This document shows, piece after piece, positions 2,344 to 29,809 of a DNA stretch of 64,000 nt (position 1 is its first letter; the number at the start of each line of letters is the position of its first letter). The translations under genes were made by a program, and so were the position numbers. This DNA is from Marsupella aquatica (taxonomy: Eukaryota > Plantae > Marchantiophyta): contig OZ316899.1 in NCBI GenBank assembly GCA_973895155.1, positions 3,907,141-3,971,140 on the forward strand. Direction: 5' to 3'. Below the pieces are notes generated by a model that was not told the DNA's origin, did no database searches, and was given only the letters and a program-made list of their open reading frames with translations.

Positions 2344-3422
2344 TGTTCTTCCAGTAAGCTTCTTTATCCTTTCAAGTGTTGTTGACAATTCTGGGTTCTT
2401 GCTCTCTTATCTCCTAAACTCATATGTTTTTCCGTTTTACTGGATCAGGTCAGAATGGAATCCGAGGAAGCGTTTCCAACTCCGGAGGAGACTAGATGGA
2501 ATGTAATTGTCACTCCTGAGAAGCCGTTTGTTTTGCCCTCATATGCTGAAAATGCCGCTAGGAGGGTTGACAAAATTAGAACTCTTTGTTGGGAAACAAA
2601 AGGTCTACGTCTTCAGAGGGGAGCAGACAGGAAGTTCATGAGGAACCCTTATATAGATGATGTTTCCCAAAGCAAGTACATTGATGACGAAGCCGCGTCC
2701 ACGGACAGATCTGAAAGCTCCGCATCAGAAACATCTGGTAGTTTATAGGTAGAAATGGGGTTTTCTTCAAATACGTCATTTAATGTTTCAATATGTAACC
2801 ATTTTGATGAATTGGCTGATTTTAAGCCCTTTCAACTTTTACTAGCGCCAGGCGCTCCTCAAACATACTGTCACTATTATATTTTTATTTCAGATCCTTG
2901 AAGTTTGAGTTGTGAAGACGTGTTCTCAGGTGCAATATTGGCTAGCGTCGGGCGCTTCCCAATTTTCTAAGGGTTCTTGGGTGTGGATTCTTTCCGGGCT
3001 GTGGTTGCATGAATGTTTTGTTTTCCGTCTGATTTTGTGGTATTAGGTGAGCTGGCGGGAATAGTCATGGATCTTTGCAGCTAGATGTCTTCTGGAAAAA
3101 CCCTGATCGGGAGGAGGCTAGAGTAGACAATGGTTGTCAACTGGGATGATTGTAGTAGTGCCAGGCGCTAATGAAAGGTTTTGGTTAATTATAATTGACT
3201 TAAATAGCATTCCGAGATCGAACATTTCATAACCCCCTTCATTAAATATCCTCCGAGAGTGCAATTGGTACAAATTATAGACTCTTCATAGCGCCCGGCG
3301 CTAGCAATAATCGTGGAGAGTTCCTACTGGTACGAGTTTCTTATATTTACTCCTGTTTGTTTTTTTGGTGTCTTTTAAAAAAACCTCGCCTTCGGCGCTA
3401 TTTTTACCAGCGCCGGGTGCTA
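856..3422. repeat. Dispersed interrupted palindrome TAGCGCC-N-GGCGCTA (at least 8 copies)
   Basis: Copies at 856, 916, 1698, 2843, 2943, 3156, 3289 and 3409, a degenerate one near 3387, and another at 29687. All lie in introns or non-coding arm sequence. Confidence 0.92.
2455..2748 (+). CDS. Short acidic ORF, possibly the last exon of the MTase-like gene
   Basis: 97-aa ORF preceded by a pyrimidine tract and CAG acceptor near 2447; candidate donor GTAATG at 2340. No recognisable domain. Confidence 0.3.
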   Translation: MESEEAFPTPEETRWNVIVTPEKPFVLPSYAENAARRVDKIRTLCWETKGLRLQRGADRKFMRNPYIDDVSQSKYIDDEAASTDRSESSASETSGSL

Positions 3423-3639
3423 CCAGAATTTTTTTTCAAAAGTTTGAGACTAGAATTTTCCTGTTACCAATCTTTTTCCCTGTTACCAGTTTCTGTTATG
3501 AATGCCTGTTTCCTGTTTTCCTGCCTTTTGTAAACACCTCATACACATAAGGGTGCCAAAAATTATCATAAAGTAAATTTTTAGATATAATAAGGGTAAT
3601 GTAAATGAGGGAAAAAATACTAAGAAGGGGGGCAAGGGG

Positions 3640-5230
3640 GCTCCGGTCGCAGGGGGTTCACTTAATATACATAGAGTGAGGGCCCAGGGGGGTCAATGCA
3701 TGAGATGCTTGCTTTGAATTGGGATCAAGAGGCAACTACAAAATTGAATTAAGCTGCTATAGCTTCAGGCATGGGATGCTCATCAGAATTGGCTGGCTGC
3801 CTTGATGTTGCTAATTGGAATAGAGCTATGGCTACTGATTGGATAAAGTTGCTTGCTATGGAGGAATAGGTTGCTGCTGATCAAGAGGTGGCTGGCTGCT
3901 GCTCATCAAAATAGACTGCTAATAATCTGAATAGGCAGCTGCAAAATTGAATTGAGGCTAGCTCGATTCTGAGAATAGAGAGGTTGTTGGCTAGCTGTGA
4001 GCTATATATGGTGGGCTACGATGTTGAGTGGGCTAAAAAATTGAAGGGCTAGCGGCTGATCAGACTGACTGCTACACAAGAATTAGAAGGGTTGGCTTCG
4101 GGCACGAGATGCTACTGCTACACAAATTGATGTTGATTCAATGTGCTACCACGAGAGAATGCTGCCGTTTCAGATTGAATTCAAGAGAGGAGAAAAACAG
4201 CTGCAAATTTGAATCGGCTTCTTCCCCACTCTTTCCCTGCCATCCCTGGATCCTTACCAACTTCATAGCTCTTCCCTAAATATATCTCTTACCCCCAATC
4301 GTAGCTCTCTATTACTCCCTGAGTCCTTGCATTTGTAAGCCGTCTCTCTTCTCCCTTTATAAACTCCACTCCCCTGATTGATAAGAACTTGGTCCTTACG
4401 AGAGTCGTGGCCCTGGTGACACTTGGAATCCCTATAAGGGGCGTGTAAAGAGTAAGTGTAATTGCGACATGGTTTATACCTACTTTACACCAAAAAAAGG
4501 CCAAATGAAAATGGGCATAACTTGGGCTAGGGGCATCTGTTGGGGCTTTGTGTTAAGTAAAGGGAAGGTAAGGCACCCCTTAGTGAAGGTGGAAACCCAA
4601 GAAAAGAAACACCCAAAGAAATTCTTAGTCGAGGCCAAGAGGGGGTCCCGATAGCTTACAAACCGGAGCCGATATAGGGGAATGAATACCAGATTTAGAG
4701 GCTGACCTTTCTCGCACCCATACCACTTTATTTAGGATCTAGGGAAGGGTACTTACCCTTGGTCCAAGGTGTAAGGCCAACAAGTTAAGAGAAGTAAGCA
4801 TAGAGGGTAGTTTACTTAGGGTAGTAAAAGGGTTACAAGTAAAATAAGGTCAACTTTGACTAGGCATAACTTGAGACTCACTCACTCTTTTGGCAAGCTT
4901 TCAAGTGGGTTAGAAATCTGGTGAGGAGGACCATAAGTGGGAGCTGGTTTGGAGGTCAAAGCATGCAACTCATGTGCGACATATTCCAGGGCTTGGAAGG
5001 AGTCAAAACAATAGGTTGTAGAGTGGGCTATGAACTATAGATTTGGACTTTGTGTGTTAGGAGGACTTGGGGGAAGTGTAGTTGGACCCCAGGTCAAGCT
5101 TGGTGTGGTGTGGAAGGAGAATAGTATATAAGGTAGAAGTTTTCCTTTATTAAGGGCCCATAATTCTCAGTTCTCAATGTATAATCTATACCTTGCTAAG
5201 TTGGGGCTAGGCTTGAGAAGGAGGTGAGGG
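3640..5230 (+). mobile_element. Diverged LTR fragment of the Athila-like family at 50658-63155, in opposite orientation
   Basis: Reverse-complement similarity to about 51400-52750, e.g. GGACCCCAGGTCAAGCTTGGTGTG at 5084 versus 51520-51543, plus the GCTGCT-rich tract. Boundaries approximate. Confidence 0.8.
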
Positions 5231-12480: not shown

Positions 12481-12719
12481 CTTTAAAGTTTTTAGGGGTT
12501 TTTAGTAAAAAATGACAAAATTTAAAGAAAGAAAGGGTTTTGCAAAAAAAATATTTTTCACTTATAAGTTAGGGGGGTCAACCCTAAAACGTCGCACGCG
12601 ATGTATGGCCCTCCATGTAATGACCCCCCCCGAGGTTTTAGAGTGTAATGTGCTCCCCACAAACCAAACACATGACTCATCAAGGGAGAAGACTGGTCCA
12701 GATACATAATCATGGCCTG

Positions 12720-14599: not shown

Positions 14600-17407
14600 C
14601 GCAATGGATGAATGTCCTACCTGGACCGTCGGGTTCCAGTTCAATAGGCCCTACTCCTGCCCCTGCTGCAGCTCCGCCAGCACCACCTCCTCTAGCCGTG
14701 CCCATGGTGGCAGCCCTGGCTGCCCCTCAAGTATCACAACAATTGCGATTTCATTATTGCCCATTCAAGGGACGCCATGGGGACAATCCGGACAAATAAT
14801 TGGATGAATTTGAAGCCAAAGAAAATGGGGAGGATGTAATTAAGCTCATAGCTCTTCCAAGAGTAATGAGGGGTGAAGCTCGCCCTTGGTACAACTTGCT
14901 GCAGCCCGACATTACTTGGCCGCAGTTCCAAGCCACCTTACTACAAGAGTTTCAAGCTATTAGGGCAGAGTTGCATTCCTTGTTGAAAATCAGCCACCTT
15001 CAAATGGGGAAGAAGGAGTCCTTGCGGAAGTTCATTAAGAAGTTTCAGAAACTGGCAACTAAAATTTGGCCCAGGCCGGGCGATGCGCTCCAGCTCACAT
15101 GGTTTCTGCATGGTTTGCACATGGACATGCAATTTTGGGTTCAACAAAATAACCCAATCTCAATGCAAGTTGCCATAGCATGTGCCAAAACATACAAGGA
15201 GTCCACTTATAACTCCCGACAAAGCCAACGGGCATGACATAAGAAAAGCAAGTACCAGACCTTCAGTGACACTGATTCCAAATCAGATGATGAGAAGAAG
15301 AAGAAGTGAAAGAAGAAGAAAAGAAGAAAAAACATTGTTCAACTTTGTCCAGCTTGGAGATAGAGTCTAATTTGGCCACGATGTCATCCAGCATCTCCTC
15401 CACCTCAAGCTCATCAAGTACTGATTTGGAAAGTGAGTCCCAAAGCAAGAAGAAGAAACGGCGAACAAAGAAGGAGGAGAAAATCAAGCCCCAAGCCCAA
15501 AGAGGAGTATCGGACCCCAGAGTGGCTGAGGCAGATAAGCTCAATGAGATCACCAATCACCTGAAAGCCTTGTCTATACATCTCGTGGAGAAGCCTATAG
15601 AGAAGAAAATGTCGTCCAAAACCCAAGCACATGCGTGGTGCTCCAAGTGCTTCAATCAGGGCATGTGGTGCAAGAATGCCCGAGGTGGAATGATTGGGTC
15701 CATCAAGTAGAGTTGGATGATGTTGACGGGCCCAGCCCAGATCTGGAGTCAATCAAGTACTTTTTTGAGGACCCCCTGACTTCGTGTATCAGATCTCCAC
15801 GGTGGGTCCTTGAAACTTGGTAGGAAGAACCGCCCATACCCTAATGGTGGCCGGGGTTTACAAGTCATAAGTAACCCGAGCGTTCCTCCAAAACCAGGGA
15901 TTTGGCGGTCCCCAATCTATTACAACGGTGAGAAACCCAACCACTTTGCAAGGGAGTACACTGAGCAAAGATGGCAAGGCGATGATAGGGGCATGCCATT
16001 GTGCCAGGTTTGCAAGACAGAGGCTCATTCCACTAATTGCCCATTGGTAATAGCTGCACAAGCAAGCACAGCTAGACCGACATCTTGGGGGGGTCACTAC
16101 ATGGAGGGCCATACATCGCGTGCAACGTTTTAGGGTTTGACCCCCCTAACTTATAAGTGAAAAATATTTTTTTGAAAAACCCTTTCTTTCTTCCAATTTT
16201 GTCATTTTTTACTAAAAAACCCCTAAAACTTTAAAGAAGTATTTTTACAATTAAATAGGCCTATGTGTTCTTTAAAGTTTAATAGTCAATAAAACATGCC
16301 CTATGTGTTCTTCCACCAAACTTTGGAAGTCTTCCGCCACACCTATTTAAATGGGCCTTTACTTCGTCGCACGTGATGTGCCACTTCTGTGGAAGTTACC
16401 CCCCGAGACCGACATAGGTCAGCTAGCTTTGAGCAATGCGGTGGTACAAATGATAGACATGGAGTGCCAAGATGATACCACTGAATGGGTCGACTTGATC
16501 AACTTGATGGAACACCCCAACCCGTCTGATGAAGCCAAATGCTACCAGGTGTCAACTAGGTCCAAAAACATGCAAGAGAAGCAGGAGGAAAAACAAAGGA
16601 AGAAGCAAGATACCACCCGGGTACAGCCAACAGTAGACATACCTCCTGAAGAGGATGACGACTACCATCGGGATGACCCAACACTATTCTATCCCCACAT
16701 AGAGGAGTTAGTAAAGCAACAATTGGAGGCTTACAAAGCACAAGAATACCAAAAAGCAATCGACAAAGACTTGAAGGCAGACGAAGCTGCTCAATGTGAA
16801 GACCAAGAGAAGCGGGAGGCCAAGGCAAAGCAACTATGTACCCACGGAGGAGAAGAAGGGAGATTACAATATTTGACAAGATGTGAAGAGTTGCCCAGTC
16901 ACGACCACGGTCGGACAACTACTCCAAAATAACCCATGGTACCGGCAACAACTGAGGGAGCTGCTTATGGGTCGGCGAAGAAGACAATTACCCCGTGTAG
17001 GCACTGCAAATTGTAACATCAAGATAAAAGGTTGTACCATCAAGCTAGTCCTTATGGACGGAAGAGCGGGAGCCAATATCATGACTGAAGAAACGTTTGT
17101 TAAGTTGGGTTATCTCACCTATCAGCCCATGGTCTGCGCTATTTGATTGGCAAATGGAGCTTGACCCTAAACCCTAAACCCTTGGGTACACTCACTAAGG
17201 TCCTCACCCTAGTAGGAGGTGTGGAATTGTACCTCAACTATTTGGTCATGAGGCCAGTCCGGCCATCCTCCTACCCAGTCCTCTTGGGGAGACCATGGTT
17301 GTATGGTGGCCGAGTAACTACGGGCTGGGGAAAGAAGGAGCTAAGATTCAGGACGCCTACGGTACAAGTGTCATGGATAGTCGATGATTATCAAGGTGAG
17401 ACTCCAC
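14600..17407 (+). pseudogene. Decayed Ty3/gypsy gag-protease remnant
   Basis: Fragments homologous to the intact 53843-59911 polyprotein: RGEARPWYN, WCSKC and CQVCKTEAHSTNC knuckles, CYQVSTRS, DGRAGAN protease, YPVLLGRPWLYG. Interrupted by MITE-2 and cut off at 17408. Confidence 0.88.
16084..16407. mobile_element. MITE copy 2 (324 bp)
   Basis: Termini CTTGGGGGGGTCA / TTACCCCCCGAG; 8-bp TSD ACCGACAT (16076-16083, 16408-16415). Confidence 0.93.
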
Positions 17408-19486
17408 GGGGTATTTACAAACAACAAGAAACACAAAACAGTAACAAGAAATAGCACTGGTACATATTTTGGGTTTTTCCGATGCTCTTCTTTTGGTCGG
17501 CGACACTTTCCGATACAGAGAAGATCGGTACTCTCCGATTGTCCCCGCATTGGGGATTTACCATACATTCTACATTGGACACGTGCTGTCCCATACTATT
17601 ACAATCGGAAATAGTTTCCCATTTAAAAACTATCAGAGCATTTCCCATTCTACCTGCATCGGACAGTGAGACTGCCGCGACGCAAGAGGCATCCGATAAA
17701 GAAAATATTGCATGTTGGTTCCGATGAACTGAGGGACGAAAAGTTTCCGATATTTGTGAAATCGGAAATGTGTTCCGACTTTTGTCCGAAACCATTACAA
17801 ACGGACGTTGGTTCCGATGTGGTAAAGATGGCAAAGTTTCCTGATACCTGTAGGATGGCACATGAGTTCCGTTTCTTTTAATATTGGAAATATCGGTTTT
17901 CAGTAGAGCCGGGGTTTTTTGAGGGTTTTATCATCTTCCTAGCTTCTAATTAAGGCATGTTGTGTTTCCGATAGGTTTTTGACTCCATTTCCATTTGAAG
18001 TATGTGGGAACTCAACTAGGGTCAACTTGAAATGAATTGGAAGCTTTCATTTCATATATATTAAAAGCATAAATATATAGCCACAGCTAGAGCCCAGAGA
18101 TTTAAGTGGTATATATAAGTAAAGTAACATGCAACAAAAAATGGTAATGACAATGTAGATAACATATATATGCCAAAAAAATCAATACATGGAGGGAAGT
18201 GGTCATTAATTAGGTCTAGCTAGTGCTAGCTACCTAGCTTTTACCATGAAATTCCTAAGTAGCTAGTTGTTCTCATTTTCCAAATCTTCCACAACAACTA
18301 CATTTGGCTGTTCTTGGACTGTGGATCAGGATCGAGGAATGTAAGGCATTACAATGGACCACTCAGGATCATCTGGATAAGGGAGATAGAATGCCTGCTC
18401 AAGATTATGAGGAAATGCAAAAGGATCTGAGGCCCTCCAATTTGAGCTGATGATAGCCCCTGTCTTCAGTCGTGTGAAGCCGCAAGCATCCTCTTCACAT
18501 GTCCGATTGTGGCCAACAAGATTCATCCAAAACCATTTGCACTTCAGCACCACCTCTTCCAATGTTGTATGCGCATGGTATTTTACAACAAGGATCTCCT
18601 CTATCTTTCCATAGTGAGCTATAGTAGAACGGATGGGATTTGTGTCAGATCTGCTACTTACAGAATCATGGGTGAACCAACCCATCACCCCACAATCTTG
18701 TGTAGCTGCCCTCTTGTCATCAAGTCGTTCCACACGAAAGTGTCTCCCCTTGGACCACATGGCAGTCCTGGTTGTAACTGTAAGTAGAGGTCCATGAAAC
18801 AAGGTGCGCAACTTATCAGTCACCATTGGGAAGTGTGATACACTCTCCCCAGCAGCCACCAAGGCATCCACTTCTAACAACTTCCCCTTCATGTACATGT
18901 GGAATTTGGGAAATAAGCATGGTCGTCGACTATTGTGCTTATCCTCCTCATAAAATGTGGTCCACTCCCCAACAATCTCTGGAGAGTTATACAACATGAA
19001 TGCAGTGAGTTTAGTGCGCTCACTAGGGTCAAGAAGCCGTTCTCCCTTTGCACCTGTCAAACGGTCATCCTCATAGTCTGCTTCTCTTGATGCCTCATCT
19101 ATCCACCCCCTTGGAGCATTTGAATCAAGTGTAGCAATAATGTTTGTACAATAAAACATGCTCTCTGCTCCAAGATGACGCTCTGCAATGCTACCTTCCA
19201 CCCTTGCGCGATTTGAAACATAGGACTTCATCACTCCCATGTACCGCTCTACCTAGTACATCCAACGACAATGTACAGGGCTTGCAATACCAACCTCATG
19301 CACTAGATGTAGTAGAAAATGAACCTGACCATCAAAAAATGGAGGAAGGGCCCTTTCAAGTTTGCACACAACCTCCACTCCAAACACCTCCATTGCTGCA
19401 ACCTCATCCTCGTTCACCTCCTTTTGACACACCCATCTCAACAACTTACCCAACGACCAAAGGGCATCACGAAGATCCTCACTACC

Positions 19487-19780
19487 CTCGGGGGTCTCAG
19501 TATATGGGGACCTCCCCATCGCCTGCAACATTTTTAGGCCTCGGACCCCCTAAAATGTAAGAAAAAAAATTATTTTTTAACCCCTATAAAGTTGGAATAT
19601 TCTTGGAATATTCTAAAAATTGGATTAAGAAGACCCTAATGTTCTTATAAGTCTCAAAATTGAATTTAAAAGACCCTATTGTTCTTCTACAAAAATTCTT
19701 AAGTCTTCCCTTAGAACATAAAATGACCCTATCCTTCGTCGCACGTGATATGCCATTTTTGTGGAAGTGAGACCCCCGAG
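19487..19780. mobile_element. MITE copy 3 (294 bp, related subfamily) inserted in the CACTA transposase
   Basis: TIRs CTCGGGGGTCTCA / TGAGACCCCCGAG; 8-bp TSD TCACTACC (19479-19486, 19781-19788); shares the CGTCGCACGTGAT motif with copies 1 and 2. Confidence 0.9.
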
Positions 19781-21942
19781 TCACTACCCAATCCAATAAT
19801 AGCAATTGGAATAACATGTTGCAATAAGCGATGATAATCATGGGTCTTCAAGAAAGCTGGCCATTTTGGAGAGTCAAGTCCACCAAATGCCTTGCGAAGA
19901 TTGGCACCATACCCTGTAGGAAATCGCATAGACCCTATGCATTTGCAAAACTTGGTCCGCTCACCTTGTGTCAAAACCCAAGGAGGATGAATAGTAAGGG
20001 GGGCATTATTGGGATCCATAGATGGCCAAAAACCATGAGGGCCATGCATCCCCATCTCTTCACAACTCTCTCTCCAGTTGTTGTCTTTCTCTCCATATAG
20101 GCGGCAAATCAAGGACCTCCCAACATTTCCCTCAATATGCATAGGGTCAAATAAATGGTGAAGTGGCATCTCAGCCCAATAAGGCAGTTGTGACAATGCA
20201 AACAAACAAGTCATGCCACACCGGGCATACTGCAATGGGTCATCTGGATTAGATACTCTCTCCCATACCTCTTTCCAATATGCAGGATCTTTTGGAATAG
20301 GTTGTGGTCGTCTGTCTGGTTGGCCATCCTCAGTGTCATATAAAAAGGGGTCTCTCCTCCAATCATGGTCTGGAGGGAGGTACTTGGTGTGACCAATATA
20401 CACTATCTTCCTCAAGGTCTTTGACTTTGGCCGCGCTATTCCTTCCAAATCAGGTCCACAAGTTGGGTAAGCTCGATATCCTGATGTGGTCAGGCCAGAA
20501 ATATATCCAAACCCTGCATATAAATATATATCCCATGCATAAGTAAATAAGTTTATTAAAAGATATATGTGCTCCTAGCTAACTCAATACATAACAAAGT
20601 ATGCTAGGTACGGTTGCCTAGCTATGGGAAGGGATAATCTAACAAAGATTCATACCTGGAAGATCATGTATGGTCCACATAAGAATGGCCTTCAACTTAA
20701 ATTCTCGACGTACGTAAGCCCCCCGTTTGCACTCGACCATCATAGCAATCCACACCCCTCCAAAGCTTTTGTAGCTCCTCAATCAATGGTTGCAAGTACA
20801 CATCAATTTTTTCCACTTGCTTAGGACCAGGGATAATCATGGAAAGGAGCAAATGACCCTTCTTCATGGACATCCATGGAGGGATGTTGTAATTAGTAAG
20901 GACCACTGGCCATAGTGAATATGGTTGGGCCTTACCTGCTAGTGCAAATGGGCTGATGCCATCCGCTGCCAATCCTAGGCGAACATGACGTGGGTCAGTT
21001 CGGAACTCACCCCATCTCTCCTCCATAAACTTGTTTGCAGGGGAGTCAACCATCATGCGCATGGTGGGTGGTTGTGAACTCATATCTGAGCAATTTTGGG
21101 AATGCCAAACCATATACTCAGCCAACTCAGCACATCTATATTGGTGGCGCAAACAAGGTATAAGAGGAAAGTACCTCATGACCTTCTGAGGAACTTTTCC
21201 CGTCAACATGTCCTCACGATACCTCGGCTTCTCACATGTAGGACATGACGTTGCATCTTTATAAGTGCCTCTAAACATAACGCAATCATTCACGCAAGCA
21301 TGTATGACTTCGTACTGCAGACCTATGGACTTCAACACCTTCTTTGCCTCTTTCCAAGAGTCTGGCAAGTTGTTTCCTTCTGGCAAGATACAATCATGCA
21401 ATGTCCGAAAGAGATCATCAAGAAGTAGGTTGCTTGCTCCATGTCTTTGCTGCAAGTTCAACAACAACATTATTGCTGAAAGACGAGACAAGCATGATCC
21501 ATCAAATATCCGAGTTTGCGCATGTTGACGTGCTTCCTCCCACTGTTTGGAGGCTGAACTCCTTGAACCTTCTTGATGTGGAAGTGGGACCTCAATGTTC
21601 TCCCCATCAACCATGTCATGATCACCATCCTCTATGTCATAGAATTGGTGCATCAAGTCATCCATGGCCCTATCTTCATCAACTCTTGATTGGGAGGCAT
21701 CTGGTTCCTGCTCTGGAACATCCGGATTGCCACCTGGTGGTAGAGAGGCATGTCGCCAATCTTCCATGGCCTGCACAAGGTGTTCGCGCATAGCTCGTGG
21801 TAACACCACAACATCCGGCTCAACATATGCATTCTATCATACAACGCACAAAACAGATATATACGTTTGAGTTAGCCCATGGATTCCTAAAAAAACTACA
21901 ATATTCTTATATTACTTCAAAAATGGGGAATACACATATGTG

Positions 21943-22476
21943 CTAAGTGTGGCCAGATCGAATGCCCATCTTGGGCGTGTTCCATTCATAGTCACAAAAC
22001 AACTCATCACCCGCCCTAATGGTCCATATGGCTACTGTCATAACATGATCATCCATATGTGTGACATAGTAAGGCAGAGTGGGTGGGCCAAAAATCTGAG
22101 CCCACTCTACATTAGGCTGGAGTCCACTCCCTCTACCATGTGTACTATTGATGTACCCAGTTATGTTATCTGAACGCACAGGGTCCCCATCAATCATCCT
22201 ACAATGCCAAGGCCTCCTTAGGACCTCATCTGGGTCTGAGTCCATCTGCAATGCATATACCCCCCAAGCTAGATGTTGGCGCAAGAGGATGTTCCAACTC
22301 TTGGATGTATACACAGGCCCAATGTAAGGGAAAAGGTGTTCCCCATCATAGCCACGACGCCAAGGCTTTGGAGGGACCTCAATGTCCTCCAAAGCAAATA
22401 AGCCTAATCCAACCTCCCCGCCAAGGGTCGATGCCTTCACTATCCATTGCCGACCCCATATGTACAGGGATATCAA
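21943..22476 (-). CDS. SET-domain (lysine methyltransferase fold) coding segment
   Basis: KASTLGGEVGLGLFALEDI ... IDGDP..DNITGYINST....PNV ... VMTVAIWTIRAGDELFCDY matches the GxG, NHxxxPN (here INST) and GEELxxDY SET signatures. Confidence 0.85.
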   Translation of the reverse strand: MISLYIWGRQWIVKASTLGGEVGLGLFALEDIEVPPKPWRRGYDGEHLFPYIGPVYTSKSWNILLRQHLAWGVYALQMDSDPDEVLRRPWHCRMIDGDPVRSDNITGYINSTHGRGSGLQPNVEWAQIFGPPTLPYYVTHMDDHVMTVAIWTIRAGDELFCDYEWNTPKMGIRSGHT

Positions 22477-24292
22477 TGGCTAGGCCACGAGGAATCGCAA
22501 AACTCTCAGGGTCAAAATCCTTGAAGACACTGATTTCCTTTCCCGTCACATATGATAAGCCCAACCTCCCTTCAACTTCTATGTACTCCTCCCCTGGTGG
22601 AGGCATAACACTCCTTCTAAAGTGCTCATGGGATGGGTCTGTGTCTAGAACTACATGCTGTTATCGATGTCTATGAGAACGTGGTCTTGTGCGTAGAACC
22701 CTAGTAGGGGGCGGTGCATCATCCCTACCATGCCCCAACTCTACCACTATGGGTTCATGAACAACATCTGCCTGAACATGTGCGGGGGTACATGATTGCT
22801 CGGGGTCTTCAACTGATGATGCAAGCAACTGTCTAGCACCAGCTAGGAATGCATCATGCCATAGTTGACTAGAGACCAATGGAGGACGGGCCCTACAAGG
22901 CACCTATTCAATCATAAACAAACAAAAATTAATACTTGTCTCCTAAAAGGTCTCAAACCAGCCAACTATTATGATAGTGTATCATATATAGCGGAGTTCA
23001 TGTCAAGCAATACCTGGCGAGCTGAATATCCCGGTAAATCACCCTCATGTCGACCATAGTTTTCGATGTGTTCAATGGACTGCCACGCTTGACGAACCAC
23101 CAGTCCTTTACATCTAAGACACCAGCATGGAATAGGGCCTAATGGAGGGGGTGCTAGAGGCTGTTGAGGGGGAGGAGGAAGACAAGTCAGAGTCGGAATC
23201 TGTATCCAAACTCTCAGAAGTCGACATTGTCTGCCAATTACACACAAACAAGTCTTTACCAAAATGCAAGATTGATTCATCACCCTAACTTGAGGTAAAC
23301 CCAAACAGGAAATATATAGTATGTTAATAATTTGCAGTGTTGGACTTAATTAGTACTTGAATGATATCCGCGCTCTACAGTGCCTACTAGGCTCTAAGCC
23401 TTAGACTATATGCTAAGGCCAATCCAAAAAAACCTGCACATACAGGCTAGGTGGGGAAGTTGAAAGATGAGATGACATACATGCAAACCTAAGTAACAAA
23501 CCAATAATTAATGAAATTAATAAAAATCAATGACGAGTTGGATGTCCAATTATAAACTCCCACAAGTAACGCATATATCATGTCAAATATTTCCAATACA
23601 TTTTGGAGGATCATATATGTCATACCTTTTGGATGCGCGTACTCTCGCTGTGCATAATGCATTGGCAAAAGTAAACCCTACTAAGAAAATCAAGGAAAAG
23701 CAACAACCCGACCCTCCAAAAACAAAAAATACAAAACTGCACAAAACGGCACTAGAGTGTTAATTTAATTTGTGACTTCTTATAGTCCCCAAAAGTTGCA
23801 CCATGCATATAGCATTGCCTCATGGTCAAAATGGAAATCATTTAAAATCAAACTGAAAATAGATCTAGGTACATACATTCAATGATCATCCATACCCACC
23901 AAAAAATAGTGTGCTAGCTTTGTCACGACAACTGTACGTTGATATGCCCGTTTTGCGCCGCACACCTAATAAGCCCACAATATAGCATAATTAACCCCCA
24001 ACTAACATAAAGGGGGACATTATAGTATACATGGGATCCAAATGCCAAAGTCCAAATGCCAAGGTCATGCAATTCACAAACCATCAAAAAATACATTGGG
24101 AGGGTTAAGTCCGATACTTTGGAGGAGGGGTCCGATACTAAGTCCAATTGACCTAGAATCGGAGTTTCCGATGCGGAAAGTATCGGACGTTATGCATTTT
24201 GGGTTTTTAGGTCACCCGACTAAAGTGCGAAGGCACTCTAGTCGGGAAAAGCATCGGGAGCATTTCACGATACCTTTGCGGAGCTCGTAGCG

Positions 24293-27222
24293 ATGGAAGG
24301 GAATGCAGGAGGGATGGGAGATGGTGCCGGGCCATCAAGCAGCTATGGTGAAGTCATGGCTCAATTGTTTAGGGAGAAGGTGGGGCTCTCGCCGAAGGTT
24401 GCATTGCAGGTAGCTCAGCTCACTCAAGGACTGATCGACAGCTCCCAGAAGGTAGCCATCACTGATGCAGAAAAACCTTTCCAAGCCAGACTCGAGGAGG
24501 AGAGATTGCAGAGGAAGAGGAAACGTAACACTAGGGAGGACAAGAGAGAGAGGCCATTGGAAGCCCTATCACCAAGACAAAAGGAGAAGAGCCTAAGGAG
24601 GGAGGCTCAGGCTGCAGAATGACAGAGAATTCAGGAGGAACGAAAGAAGGCAGAGGATAGGGCCAAGAGGCCAAAATTGTTTCTGAATGAGGGAGGTGCT
24701 CCACTCTCCAGGAGTTATCGTTTGTTTGGGAGTCAAGTTAGGCAGATTGTGAGGTCTCATTTTGGCCCGATGGACTACTGGGGGAAGAAGAAGCAGGATG
24801 AGAGATTTAGAATTCGAGAGCAAATCAAAGAGAGATTTTTGAATGGGTCGTTTGTGGACAATCGATTCTTAAACAAAAAGATCTCAGTCTCACTTGCAGA
24901 CATGCAAAATCATGTACGAGAGAAGATGCGAAAGTACCTGGCTGAATGCAAACTGGATGAGGAGGTGATCAGGAAAGGGGGAAGCCCAGCTGGTGAAATT
25001 CTTGAGGATGCTTGGTGTGCTTGGGTTGAAGAAGAGTTGCATGTTCGAGCTTGGCAAGCCACACAACGCTGGGAAGCTGAAATTCAAGCAGCTCAAAAGA
25101 AGATTAAACAAGGAGAGATGGTGAATACTGCACCCATGCATCAAGAACTTGAAGAATGGTTAGCAAAATCAGCCCTGCTTGGAGACCCACCATCCTGGCT
25201 AATGAAAGCTCTGTTGAGAGTAACAAAGAGGCCAAAGGTTACTCACAGAATGGGGCAAGGCGGATCACAACGTCTCAAGGCCGATTTTGTAAGTGCTCCA
25301 TTCCCCTCCTCTCCATGCATTCCTTCAGCAACATTCCTCCTCCCTAATCACCTGAGGCCAATTGACAAATGCCTAACCCTTCCAAACCCGGGACAGGTCT
25401 TTGTATGCCTGTAGGTTGCTCGATCATGCCTTAGTTTTTTTTGCTTTTGGCATGTAAGGTCCGATTCTAGTCCGATCCTTTAAGTATCGGATGCAGCATC
25501 GGACAATAAAAAAGAATCGGAACTGTCGAGGGTACCGATTCTATTAGTATCGGATATATTCAAATTTTTGAATAGTTTGTGCATGAAAGGCTAAGTGTTC
25601 TTATGGGTCTTTGACGGTGAAGGGTTTATATAGGTGTTTAATTAGGCCAGGGTAGGGTTGCTATAATTGACCTTAGTATTGGGGGTGGCATATGGTTTGG
25701 GTGTGTAGGAGAAAGAGCACGGACGACCATTGTTGCCGGCAGAGTGAGAGCTGGCAAAGGAGCATGGTGCTCGGGCGTTGAAGATTCACATGGACGACAT
25801 GTTGGCCTCGATAAGTGCGGATATTAGAATGATTTGAAAGATGGCTTCATGCTGGTATGTATGTTGCGGAATGACATATGGATTGGAGATTGTTACTATG
25901 TGCAGGATGAGTCAGGGGGTGAGGAGGACTTGGAGAGTGAGGAGGATGGTGAGGGGGAGGAGGACGAGGAGGACAAGGAGGATGCGGAGGATGATAGTGC
26001 TTCAGAGGGGAGTGTGGCCGAGGCTCCAGTACGAGGTTCTACTGGTGCGCGTGGCCGGTCAGGACCCCAAGAGAGTGGATGTCACCAGTTTGGTCGGGGT
26101 GTAGGTGGCTCCACTCGCCGGATGGAGCGTAGAGCAGGTGATATGCCTCCTTCTCATCAAAGATTAGCTGGTAGGAGTGGACGGAGTGAGTCCCGGGTTC
26201 CAGCCATAGTAGGTCACAACCAAGGGGTTCGTAGTGAGTCCGGAGTTCTAGCCACAGCAGGTGGTCGAGTGAGGACTGGCCCTGGTGTTGTACCAGGTGG
26301 GTCTTGACAACGGGCTGGTGTTCATACTGGTCGTGTCGTTGGCCAGTCAGGAGGTTCCGGCCGTAGCAGTGGAGGTGAGTCTTGCCCTGAGGGGGGTAGT
26401 GGTGGAGTTGTTGCACCTCGTCAGTTTAGGGCTGGCCCTGGTAGTGTACCAGCTGGTTCACGACAGTCCGGGGGAGGCCTTGGTGGTCATGTGCCCACAC
26501 CATCTCCTGTTCATAGTGGTGGTGTAGGCATCCAGTTTGGAGGTTCCGGCCGTAGTGGTGGAGGTGAGTCTCGTCCTGAGGGGGGTAGTGGTGGAGTTGT
26601 TGCACCTCGTCAGTTTAGGGCTGGCCTTGGTAGTGTACCAACTGGTTCACGACAGTTCGGGGGAGGCCTTGGTGGTCATGTGCCCACACCATCTCCTGTT
26701 CATAGTGGTGGTGTAGGCATCCAGTCTAGAGGTTCCGGCCATAGTGGTGGAGGTGAGTCTCGCCCCGAGGGGGGTAGTGGTGGAGTTGCTGCACCTCGTC
26801 AGTTTAGGGCTAGCCCTGGTAGTGTACCAGCTGGTTCGCGACAGTCCGGGGGGGGCCTTGGTGGTCATGTGCCCACACCATCTCCTATTCATAGTGGTGG
26901 TGTAGGCACCCAGTCGGGAGGCTCCCGTGATAGTGGTGGAGGTGAGACTCGTCCTGAGGGGGGTAGTGGTGGTGGTGCTGGAGGGGCTTCTTTCCACACT
27001 TGTGTCGGGGAAGGAGTGCCTTCCCATGGTTCAGGCGCATCTGGAGGTGGGGGAGTACCAGAGATTGCTTCTGCACCTCATCCACATGACGATGGAGGCA
27101 GATCAGGTAGCCACGACCATGATGTCCTACCTAGTGTGTCAGTGGTAGAGACTCATAGAGCAGAGCAGCCTAGTCGTTCCCATGTGAAGAAGAGGAAGAC
27201 GCGACATAGCTTGTATGGATAG
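24293..27222 (+). pseudogene. CACTA second gene (TnpA/Ptta-like), transcribed divergently from the transposase
   Basis: ORFs 24293-24622 and 24677-25414 in one frame, with H-R-M-G-Q-G-G..L motif followed by a GTAAGT donor. Later acidic and Gly/Ser-rich ORFs (25834-26307, 26491-27222) end in a KKRK NLS-like motif. Confidence 0.55.
26350..26975 (+). repeat. 189-bp (63-codon) tandem repeat, about 3.3 units
   Basis: GTGCCCACACCATCTCC recurs at 26491, 26680 and 26869. Confidence 0.93.
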
Positions 27223-27657
27223 TGGACTAGGTAGACATGTATAGATCTAGTACCAGGCTAGCGAGGTGGATAGTTGGAGGGCATTATGTCCATTTGATAT
27301 GCCCAGCCTTTAGCATAGCTGGCACTCACTAGTACATATTAAGCTGATTTCCGATGCTCAATTTTTGCGAACAATCGGCGTTCGATTCTTTTAGCATTGG
27401 AAATTCCGATTATCACAAAATGGCAATATGCCATACTCTCGGCTTTGGATATCATCATTTCCGATATAATTGACAACGGAACCTTTCCGATGCGTTAAAA
27501 AACACATCATATCCGTTAGAAAACACATCGGATCCCTCAACAAAAACTTTGATTGATATGTCCAATGTTTTTTGTAATGAAAATGATGTGCGTTACAATA
27601 TTGATCGGAAAAGTTCCGTAGTTAATAAGAACGGATATTATATCTGATTGTGCTAAC

Positions 27658-27790
27658 ATGGCAAAGTCCGATGCTGGGAGAATGGGAAAGTCCGATGCTG
27701 GGAGTATGGGAAAGTCCGATACTAGAAGAATGGGAAAGTCCGATGCTAGAAGAATGGGAAAGTCCAATGCTGGGAGCATGGGAAAGTCTG
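27658..27790 (+). repeat. 24-bp subterminal tandem array ATGGGAAAGTCCGATGCTRGRAGA, about 5.5 units
   Basis: Visible directly; an inverted counterpart lies at about 28645-28750. Confidence 0.93.
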
Positions 27791-28644
27791 GTTGTGGCAA
27801 AAAGACAAATTTTGATTGTGTTAGAATGAAAAGTTTTGATGTGTTAGATGGGGTATGTGGTTGCACCGACATACTCTTCCCAAAAGATGCAATCATTCTT
27901 GCATGCATGAATAACTTTATACTTGAGGCAAATGGACTTGAGTGTTGTTTTTGCCTCCTTCCAAGACCCAACATATTGTTCCCTTAAGGAAATATGTGCT
28001 CAACATGCAGCCAAGTCCAAAATATATCATCTAGAAGGAGATTGCTTCTCCCATGTAGTCTTTGTTGCAAGTCCAACAACAACATAGTTGATAAAAGATG
28101 AGACAATCAGGAGCCATTGATGCTAAGGATTTGGAAGGACCAAAATATCATCAATAACTAATAAGCCATAATATTATCCCATATCAAATCTAATGAAGGA
28201 AGGCTTTACTATCGACGAATGACCCCTGCCAAATTTCTATTGGTTTCTCCTAGGGGAATGTAACAGGGTAATTAGAATAGGTCACTTGATGCAAAGATCT
28301 AATCTCATGATAGAGAAAAATGGATCAAGAATGGGTCCAAATTATGGGTCTTAGTAAATTCACAAGTGTATAAAATCCCCAAACACTCTAAGTCAAACAA
28401 CAAAAGTGCTAAGCTTGCATGTACAATGTAAGGAATAAGAACCACAAAGTTAAGCTCATGTTGGAGGAATAGCAATTGGGATGGGTGACCAATTAGTTGA
28501 GAAAATTTGAAGAGTTCACATGTCAAGGGAAATGGGCACCTAGCTCATAGTTCCAAATGAAAGTAGAACCCAATTAAAGGATCGAAAGAGATGGGTGACC
28601 TGAGCATGTCGCGTCCGCTGAAATGCATATCCCATTTTGATTGC

Positions 28645-28750
28645 TTTGGACTTTCCCATTCTCCTAGCATCGGACTTTCCCATTCTCTCACCATCGGACT
28701 TTCCCATTCTCCTAGCATCGGACTTTCCCATTCTCCCACCATCAGACTTT
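28645..28750 (-). repeat. 24-bp subterminal tandem array, inverted copy, about 4 units
   Basis: GCATCGGACTTTCCCATTCT repeats. Confidence 0.92.
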
Positions 28751-29809
28751 CTGATAGAAGTCCGATTGTCGATATCCGATACTATTAAAATGGCATGTTG
28801 CGATGCTAGTAGTATCGGATGTATGGTTTTTCAAATTTTATTTTACAAAGGCATCCGATGTGGAGAGAATCGGAAAAAGGAGGTAAAATGTACTAGTGAC
28901 TATGCATGGAGATGTTCTCCATTTTTTGTACTTTTGCCCTGGATATTTCATTTTTGTATATAAGATATAGTTATGCCGTGTCATGCCCGGGTTTCAACGT
29001 ACATAGTGTGCAATCAAAATTGATAGTCTCTCTTGACTAAATGACCTCTCTAAACCCTAGATAAAAACTCAGTTAAAGAATTAAATTGCACCCCAATTAA
29101 ACCCCCAATTAGTCCCCCATTTAAAATAGGCCCAATCAAGCTCGCCAAATAGTTTCTGGTAGATACCGATCCATATCCGATGCCACAATCATCATACTTT
29201 TCCATCCCAAACGTATCGCAAAGTCTGATTCTACTATAATTGCAATTTCCGTTCCAAATAACATCGGACAATTCCGATGTTAAAACAATCGGGCATTTCC
29301 ATGTCCAGAATATTGGTCTAGAATCAGACGCCTCCATTAACAAAAAATGCGTGGAACAGACATCCGATTAAGCGGGCATCGGACATAGTGTTTCCCGACA
29401 CTTTAGATGACTGAACTCCTGAATGTTTTGGTATCGGTAGTTCCAATTAGTTTCCGATTGTCATTTTCCGATAAAAAGTATATTGGAAAATGCGATTCTT
29501 TTGGTATCGGACAGGTGAGATTTCCGCGTCGAATTTCCTGAAGGCGTCCGATGGAAATACAATCGGTAAAACGCCTCAAAATGTACTAGTGTAGTTATTG
29601 GTAACAAGAAAGTGGGTGGTAATTTTTTTGGAATTTTTTTTGGAATTTTTTTTTGTTTTGTTTTGGGTTAGTCATCATCATACTGCTAGCGCCTGGAGCT
29701 ACAATAGCAACGCTTGGCGCTCGCAAAAAAATGTCATGATTTTAATTATTTTGAAAAATGAGACTTTAAATGGTACATTTTTAGATCATTTTTTATTGGT
29801 AACAATAAA

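Follow-up and report, generated by a model that had tools for sequence, protein, structure and literature searches.

According to PMC12730594, which cites Kojima and Jurka (2014, Repbase Reports), genes for SET histone methyltransferases are carried by the HarbingerS and Phytophthora MuDR transposons. The present study concerns a CACTA (En/Spm) element of the liverwort Marsupella aquatica, whose transposase gene contains an exon for a SET domain. The element was found in a stretch of 64,000 nt (NCBI GenBank assembly GCA_973895155.1, contig OZ316899.1, positions 3,907,141–3,971,140 of the forward strand); this whole stretch is referred to below as the window, and all coordinates are counted from its first nucleotide. 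HarbingerS and Phytophthora MuDR resemble the window element in being cut-and-paste DNA transposons with a SET gene of their own as a conserved accessory function. They belong, however, to the PIF/Harbinger and Mutator superfamilies, occur in other hosts and are reported to have SET as an accessory gene, whereas the SET of the window is an exon inside a Transposase_21-type CACTA transposase gene of land plants. The transposase encoded in the window is of the Transposase_21 (CACTA) type and not a Harbinger/PIF transposase.

Helitrons with SET genes are also on record, and within the EnSpm/CACTA superfamily itself, Plavaka elements of the red alga Bostrychia moritziana (17–19 kb) contain PAG2, a separate accessory gene that combines a DNA methylase domain (PF01555) with SET (bioRxiv 10.1101/2025.02.11.637652). 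Plavaka PAG2 and the window family have in common an EnSpm-superfamily element with SET and a very high copy number; the window element differs in having no methylase domain, in its plant Transposase_21 transposase, and in the position of SET between transposase exons. Of the two PAG2 domains, Pfam detected only SET in the window open reading frames (ORFs) and in the related proteins P0212, P0001, P0017, P0010, P0226 and P0233, PF01555 being absent. Another accessory gene, with ParB and DNA-methyltransferase, is found in the Ectocarpus Sola1 transposon (PMC12477816). Thus, SET-carrying transposons are already known, and the opinion of the preliminary description of the window, that such an arrangement was undescribed, goes too far in view of HarbingerS, Phytophthora MuDR, Helitrons and the red-alga Plavaka; a SET exon in a CACTA transposase gene of bryophytes is a new variant. 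The literature search, with Repbase reports outside its coverage, found no bryophyte or land-plant CACTA element with SET, and no experimental study of a transposon-carried chromatin enzyme in land plants. VANDAL (MuDR) transposons encode the anti-silencing protein VANC (Hosaka et al. 2017, cited in PMC12730594); as described there, VANC resembles the SET protein proposed here in being a transposon-encoded factor thought to act on the chromatin state of its own element, but it is sequence-specific and not a SET-type enzyme, the role of the SET protein being putative.

Two further systems bear on the structure of the gene. SETMAR, the primate SET-mariner fusion, resembles the window unit in that a single transcription unit encodes both SET and transposase, with splicing to connect them. 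SETMAR, however, is an immobile host gene that arose by transposase capture, whereas the element in the window belongs to a mobile family of hundreds of copies, has both ends intact and is flanked by a target duplication, and its SET exon carries a stop codon, so that no fusion is predicted; these properties are not those of a domesticated host gene. In maize En/Spm, TnpA and TnpD are produced from one transcript by alternative splicing, and the coding sequence of TnpA, which binds DNA, lies downstream of the transposase ORFs. The model proposed below is similar in that a CACTA element would make two proteins from one promoter by alternative splicing; unlike maize TnpA, the alternative product would be an enzyme-type SET protein that shares the N-terminal Zn module of the transposase.

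The SET exon and its place in the transposase gene

Comparison of the window with its relatives shows, at the level of sequence, that the transposase unit contains a SET exon which ends in a stop of its own, is found throughout the family and is under selection. The parts of the unit are given below (a slash marks a splice junction).

17455–29591, minus strand: whole CACTA element, 12.1 kb including a nested element
23014–23227, minus strand: exon 1, with ATG at 23227–23225 and donor CAG/GTATTG in phase 0
22904–23013, minus strand: intron 1, 110 nt, GT..AG, phase 0
21943–22903, minus strand: exon 2 or SET cassette, ending in TAG at 21945–21943 after 320 codons (family majority)
21988–22410, minus strand: SET domain proper, PF00856, residues 23–163 of ORF 22476–21943
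21834–21933, minus strand: intron 2 of the preliminary description, 100 nt, with donor TGT/GTATTC three codons past the TAG and acceptor GATAG/AAT in phase 0
20700–21833, minus strand: exon 3, an acidic linker and the first part of Transposase_21
18326–20574, minus strand: remaining transposase coding parts (Transposase_21 C-part, DUF4218 and DUF4216 by Pfam), interrupted by a miniature inverted-repeat transposable element (MITE)

The element shows the terminal inverted repeats and the 3-bp duplication of CACTA/En-Spm transposons: its CACTA-type terminal sequences are CACTGGTACAT at 17455 (plus strand) and CACTAGTACAT at 29591 (minus strand), and the target duplication TAG flanks it at 17452–17454 and 29592–29594. 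The SET domain lies between these ends, as had been proposed, and the genes of the transposase/SET unit are encoded on the minus strand of the element.

Bioinformatics analysis of the minus-strand ORF 22476–21943 (177 aa) revealed the motifs GLGLFA, LFPYIGPVY (LFPYxGPxY), GYINST, PNVEW and GDELFCDY. The PF00856 search suggested in the preliminary description gave 27.0 bits against a cut-off of 22.4 (E-value, 6e-6) and so bears out the SET domain recognized there by eye. Relatives scored 34.1, 30.0, 27.8 and 25.0 bits, and two Riccia and Logan members fell slightly under the cut-off. An AlphaFold2 model of the window ORF reached a mean predicted local distance difference test score (pLDDT) of 86.8 and a predicted template-modelling score (pTM) of 0.82, and Foldseek matched it to the SET domains of MLL1, SETD8, NSD1, SETD2 and LegAS4 with a probability of 1.0 and template-modelling (TM) scores of ~0.5–0.57; the model thus has the SET fold. 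In the model of the Calypogeia fissa protein, a confident block of ~205 residues (N-flank and SET) follows a disordered linker. Language-model neighbours of the SET domain are small giant-virus SETs. A giant-virus donor, at which these neighbours hint, is not claimed, as Foldseek separates no group: viral, solved cellular and AlphaFold DB SETs score alike (TM about 0.5–0.6, 15–25% identity), and therefore no donor is assigned.

The Zn motif C-x-C-x2-C...H (CWCLRC...HIENYGRH) of exon 1 is encoded at 23139–23014. The Pfam scan gave no score to this motif in the window; an hhalign comparison of a small alignment of the relatives' Zn motif with N-termini of seed-plant CACTA transposases carrying PF13963 showed homology to the Transposase-associated domain core (probability, 93.6%; E-value, 2e-7), in agreement with its initial assignment. 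In P0100, a related full-length transposase, the Zn motif is found directly at the N-terminus with a weak PF13963 match. On the other side of the SET exon, ORF 21809–20697 matches Transposase_21 at 118 bits (Pfam), so that the Transposase_21 exon expected after SET is present from 21833 onward. Coding conservation in exon 3 starts exactly at the acceptor (NAYVEPD / NQFVQPD / NQFVESD), and this phase-0 acceptor (GATAG/AAT) is kept in relatives. Transposase_21, DUF4218, DUF4216 and the N-terminal Zn module together make up a CACTA transposase. A separate observation concerns L012, a Logan-contig relative, in which one 660-codon ORF (3207–5186) spans what are two exons in relative L002 (Transposase_21 C-part/DUF4218 and DUF4218/DUF4216), indicating that this intron is absent in the L012 lineage.

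The window copy is a dead, decayed member of a high-copy bryophyte CACTA (En/Spm) family. Four sequencing runs (X1, X2, X4 and X6) from three coded organisms contain the stretch, and the very high word depth across both SET and transposase (253–282 in the long contigs of X1) indicates a high-copy family. The word depth of the SET exon equals that of the transposase in contigs of organisms A and B (X1: 256 versus 271). Compared with the family majority, the following lesions are private to this copy: a frame-shifting 17-nt deletion in exon 1 after 23174, where the restored bases join the ATG frame to the Zn frame; a TAA stop at 22663–22661, for which the majority codon is CAA (22663 A>G, plus strand); a 2-nt deletion between 22458 and 22457, where the majority has two extra bases after 22457 that join frame 22660–22382 to the SET ORF; a 4-nt insertion near 20708 that breaks the frame of exon 3, the majority being four bases shorter; and the MITE at 19487–19780. 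With these lesions set aside, exon 1 comprises 77 codons and exon 2 comprises 320 codons and a stop, and the predicted Zn-SET protein is ~397 aa long.

Three correctable lesions had been assumed at the outset. The stop at 22661 and the frameshift near 22470 are indeed private, whereas the stop at 21943 belongs to the family: TAG 21945–21943 is retained in the majority contig of X1 (record 6, 21659–21958, depth 268.7), which has five differences from the window, all of them elsewhere (21728, 21733, 21785, 21808 and 21883). For X2, X4 and X6 no strongly supported difference is listed at the TAG, and the neighbouring positions 21883 and 21976 are listed for all four runs.

A phmmer search of 1.84 billion representatives returned 77 representative clusters, 53 of them at E<1e-10, and in nearly all 77 the SET domain finishes within a few residues of the protein end. 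The named hosts are the liverworts Riccia sorocarpa and Calypogeia fissa and the mosses Sphagnum troendelagicum, S. magellanicum and S. tenellum. In every fetched relative locus that reaches the transposase (L001 and L005–L008 from Riccia, L002, L003, L004, L009 from C. fissa, L011, L012–L014 and L015), the order Zn exon, SET ORF, Transposase_21/DUF4218/DUF4216 was found on one strand. L002, from a JGI metagenome, is an intact copy with 70% identity and all ORFs open; a metagenome profile scan with the narrower alignment A4 yielded one short locus, L010, which ends before the transposase junction. Zn-SET proteins terminating after SET are represented by gene models P0212 and P0017 and by ORF P0010, and in L003 and Riccia-1 (L001/L006) Zn and SET form one uninterrupted ORF. 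Several Riccia gene models connect parts of SET with parts of the transposase, but do so in ways that contradict one another. In public annotations, the transposon ORFs P0015, P0017, P0036, P0107, P0212, P0226, P0233 and P0244 are filed as host 'SET domain-containing' or hypothetical proteins.

The ratio of non-synonymous to synonymous substitution rates (dN/dS) is 0.18–0.24 for SET, 0.12–0.13 for transposase exon 3 and 0.05–0.19 for the Zn exon; the value of ~0.2 for the SET domain shows it to be under purifying selection. Among eight lineages, the pairwise identity of SET rises and falls with that of the transposase (Spearman 0.69, Mantel p about 0.005), and this co-divergence agrees with a single old acquisition followed by joint descent. 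That the segment is a one-off captured fragment of a host gene or a chance ORF, for which nothing speaks beyond the damaged state of this copy, is refuted by the presence of the exon at family depth in several organisms, by conserved relatives at the same position in liverworts and mosses, and by its dN/dS of ~0.2.

Two predicted products and the competing gene structures

The SET exon sits in the intron between the Zn-motif exon and the Transposase_21 core, with phase-0 boundaries and its own stop. From the comparison of lineages, it probably acts as a family-wide cassette exon in one transcription unit, from which alternative splicing would yield two proteins: exon 1 joined to the SET exon would give the Zn-SET protein, whereas skipping of the SET exon, with exon 1 joined to exon 3 onward, would give an ordinary Zn-transposase. 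As the N-terminal Zn module would be common to the two products, the SET protein may reach the same partner or DNA as the transposase. It is speculated that it would methylate a chromatin protein there, on a lysine, at copies of the element itself, and so most likely counter host silencing.

The junctions agree with such a layout. Gene model P0212 of C. fissa splices at the identical intron 1 junction (SAQQ/VP) and ends after SET, and the donor and acceptor of intron 1 are conserved in phase 0 in seven lineages, so that this intron stands as first drawn. In 7/7 lineages exon 1 can be joined either to exon 2 or to exon 3 at phase 0, with the frame kept and no stop encountered. In L003 and Riccia-1 the Zn motif is still followed by a homologous donor (GGA/GTACCA and GAG/GTACAG, respectively), which is phase 0 and fits the frame of exon 3, and all nine lineages tested allow exon 1 to splice in frame both to the SET exon, or its counterpart, and to the exon of the transposase. 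Because conservation of exon 3 starts at the acceptor, this exon must be preceded by another coding exon, and exon 1 is the only candidate that every lineage has available. Moreover, L002, L012 and L011 are otherwise open, and the window family was amplified with the TAG in place; the transposase therefore cannot depend on reading through SET.

It is rather unlikely, yet it has to be weighed with any of the gene structures, that the SET module is catalytically dead and serves as a binding or decoy module, which might, for example, occupy histone tails or a host silencing factor. The His of NHxC is replaced by a Ser (S112), pre-SET and post-SET Cys clusters are missing, the tail past the SET Tyr is very short (2–18 residues), and identity to any characterised SET is low (15–23%). 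On the other hand, the cofactor- and catalytic-type positions GxG, YxG, N (N111), E and Tyr are invariant or nearly so among 39 family members, in which G26, G54, Y57, S112, N123, E159 and Y164 are strictly invariant. The Ser of the NH motif is thus a conserved family trait and not decay: the preliminary description was right in reading NS at this site. The best sequence-profile match among solved structures was to Legionella effectors of the LegAS4/RomA type (PDB 5czy, 8sr6; E-value, 2e-4), and LegAS4 and its homologue have Phe instead of His at the NH-motif site (YINFS versus YINSS/T in the window family). These proteins differ in being bacterial and secreted, with ankyrin repeats, and at ~23% identity the likeness is one at the level of the SET superfamily. 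LegAS4-type enzymes of Legionella are active, as are small viral SETs whose tails are short.

An independent accessory gene, nested in the first intron of the transposase gene with its own promoter and start codon and with nothing in common with the transposase protein, is an unlikely alternative to the cassette exon. Stand-alone SET ORFs of 230–340 aa are called in many contigs, an internal Met is found upstream of the conserved pre-SET segment in most lineages, and HarbingerS transposons carry SET as a separate gene. Against such a gene, the exon-2 acceptor (...ATAG/G) is retained in 7/7 lineages, at phase 0 and in the frame of exon 1; Zn motif and SET share the uninterrupted ORF of L003 and Riccia-1, and the gene model of C. 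fissa has exon 1 spliced to exon 2.

Several observations weigh against the cassette exon with its own stop. In each of ten lineages, the stretch from the conserved Tyr to the first stop was searched for GT donors matching the frame of the conserved exon-3 acceptor, and such a donor was found in four: L009 (C. fissa), L004, Riccia-1 and Riccia-2 (L007/L008). Riccia gene model P0107 is a full Zn-SET-transposase fusion, and some of the family may make a fusion isoform. Just past the TAG of the window lies the splice donor TGT/GTATTCCC, which is common to the window and Riccia-1, a hint that the ancestor may have read through. The TAG is explicit in the majority of X1 only, while for X2, X4 and X6 its presence rests on no difference being listed. 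An mRNA with the SET exon and with the transposase exons as its 3' untranslated region would be a target of nonsense-mediated decay unless it were polyadenylated early. The canonical NH-motif His is a Ser, and SET catalysis is predicted only. Finally, the contigs run unspliced through both introns, the runs behaving like DNA, and no joint among the 15 listed of 74 matches either predicted intron.

Some of these observations would fit a single Zn-SET-TnpD polypeptide, a mobile counterpart of SETMAR in which the stop at 21943 is decay, as assumed in the preliminary description. The donor past the TAG and the exon-3 acceptor are both phase 0, so that the frame continues if the TAG is ignored; Riccia-1 has the same donor without a preceding stop, alongside model P0107, and C. 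fissa L009 has the in-frame donor AAG/GTTGTG ahead of its stop. Such a polypeptide is nevertheless very unlikely. The majority contig of the family, at high depth, contains the TAG, and in the window no GT occurs between the SET Tyr codon and TAG 21945–21943. Six of the ten lineages (window, L002, L003, L012, L011 and L015) have no in-frame donor from SET to exon 3; the stop follows the SET Tyr after 14 codons in the window and after 2–7 codons in the other five, the intact L002 included. The in-frame donors of the remaining four were rejected as proof of fusion, since 2–3 GTs in a short tail give a chance candidate in roughly half of the lineages, and ~4/10 is about that expectation. Some other Riccia models gain an in-frame join only by cutting into SET and removing its conserved Tyr. 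Read-through of the stop codon was considered and dropped, as the context TAG-CAC-ATA is unlike the UAG-CAR-YYA type, which is the read-through context known from plant viruses. In the window family, SET and transposase consequently do not form one spliced ORF, and the three exons do not join in one frame as had been supposed. What stands of the original proposal of a mobile CACTA family with a chromatin writer fused to its transposase is the family-wide SET-domain protein in the transposase unit; the single SET-TnpD polypeptide is not supported for the window family.

Further features of the element and implications for bryophytes

Apart from the transposase/SET unit, the element contains the following features.

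24293–27222, plus strand: second gene of the element, divergent from the transposase/SET unit
27327–28898, no strand assigned: nested, internally deleted CACTA element, 1572 bp, target duplication ACT/ACT
19487–19780, no strand assigned: MITE-like insertion, 294 bp, splitting a transposase exon

The first 1.1 kb of the second gene shows 41–60% aa identity to the C. fissa element (L009 7339–8371; 532-aa gene model), and the part beyond consists of Gly/Ser/Pro-rich repeats. Pfam scans gave no match for this second gene, which may encode a TnpA-like partner protein, nor for exon 1 and the exon-2 linker of the transposase/SET unit. The nested CACTA element retains a remnant of a related transposase (28118–27850, ~63% aa identity), and the arrays of a ~24-nt subterminal motif at 27643–27828 and 28630–28756 (inverted) belong to it; the same motif is present near the left end of the host element, at 17641–17664. 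Subterminal repeat arrays are a further trait of CACTA/En-Spm transposons. The MITE has perfect 13-nt inverted ends, CTCGGGGGTCTCA / TGAGACCCCCGAG, and in the sequencing runs its borders at 19487 and 19780 are marked by a depth spike and loose contig ends. Read depth on the MITE is 100–300 times that of the CACTA family (X1: ~79,000 versus 300–2,000), which places it in an extremely abundant family. Outside the element, the ORFs at 14800–17400, adjoining its left end, appear by eye to be retrotransposon gag-like, with Zn-knuckle-type Cys/His patterns, and an inverted repeat pair of roughly 60–107 nt lies at 12481–12630 and 16087–16236, 3.5 kb apart.

Published abstracts describe bryophyte transposons as marked by trimethylation of lysine 27 of histone H3 (H3K27me3) as well as by H3K9 methylation. 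A broader picture, which we put forward tentatively, is that a CACTA lineage of mosses and liverworts, possibly old given its presence in both groups, may have equipped its transposase gene with a chromatin writer in the form of a phase-0 cassette exon. Depending on the splicing, the gene would produce the transposase or a Zn-SET enzyme, the latter delivered to the element's own copies or to the partners of the transposase to escape or steer silencing, with fusion also possible in Riccia and Calypogeia.

The filing of transposon ORFs as host SET proteins inflates the counts of host chromatin genes in bryophyte genomes. Chromatin enzymes carried by transposons reveal ways in which mobile DNA resists host silencing or turns it to its own use, and few cases are known; the bryophyte SET-carrying family adds one that is conserved, selected and very abundant. 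Its cassette layout predicts two isoforms, shared targeting and a defined histone or non-histone substrate.

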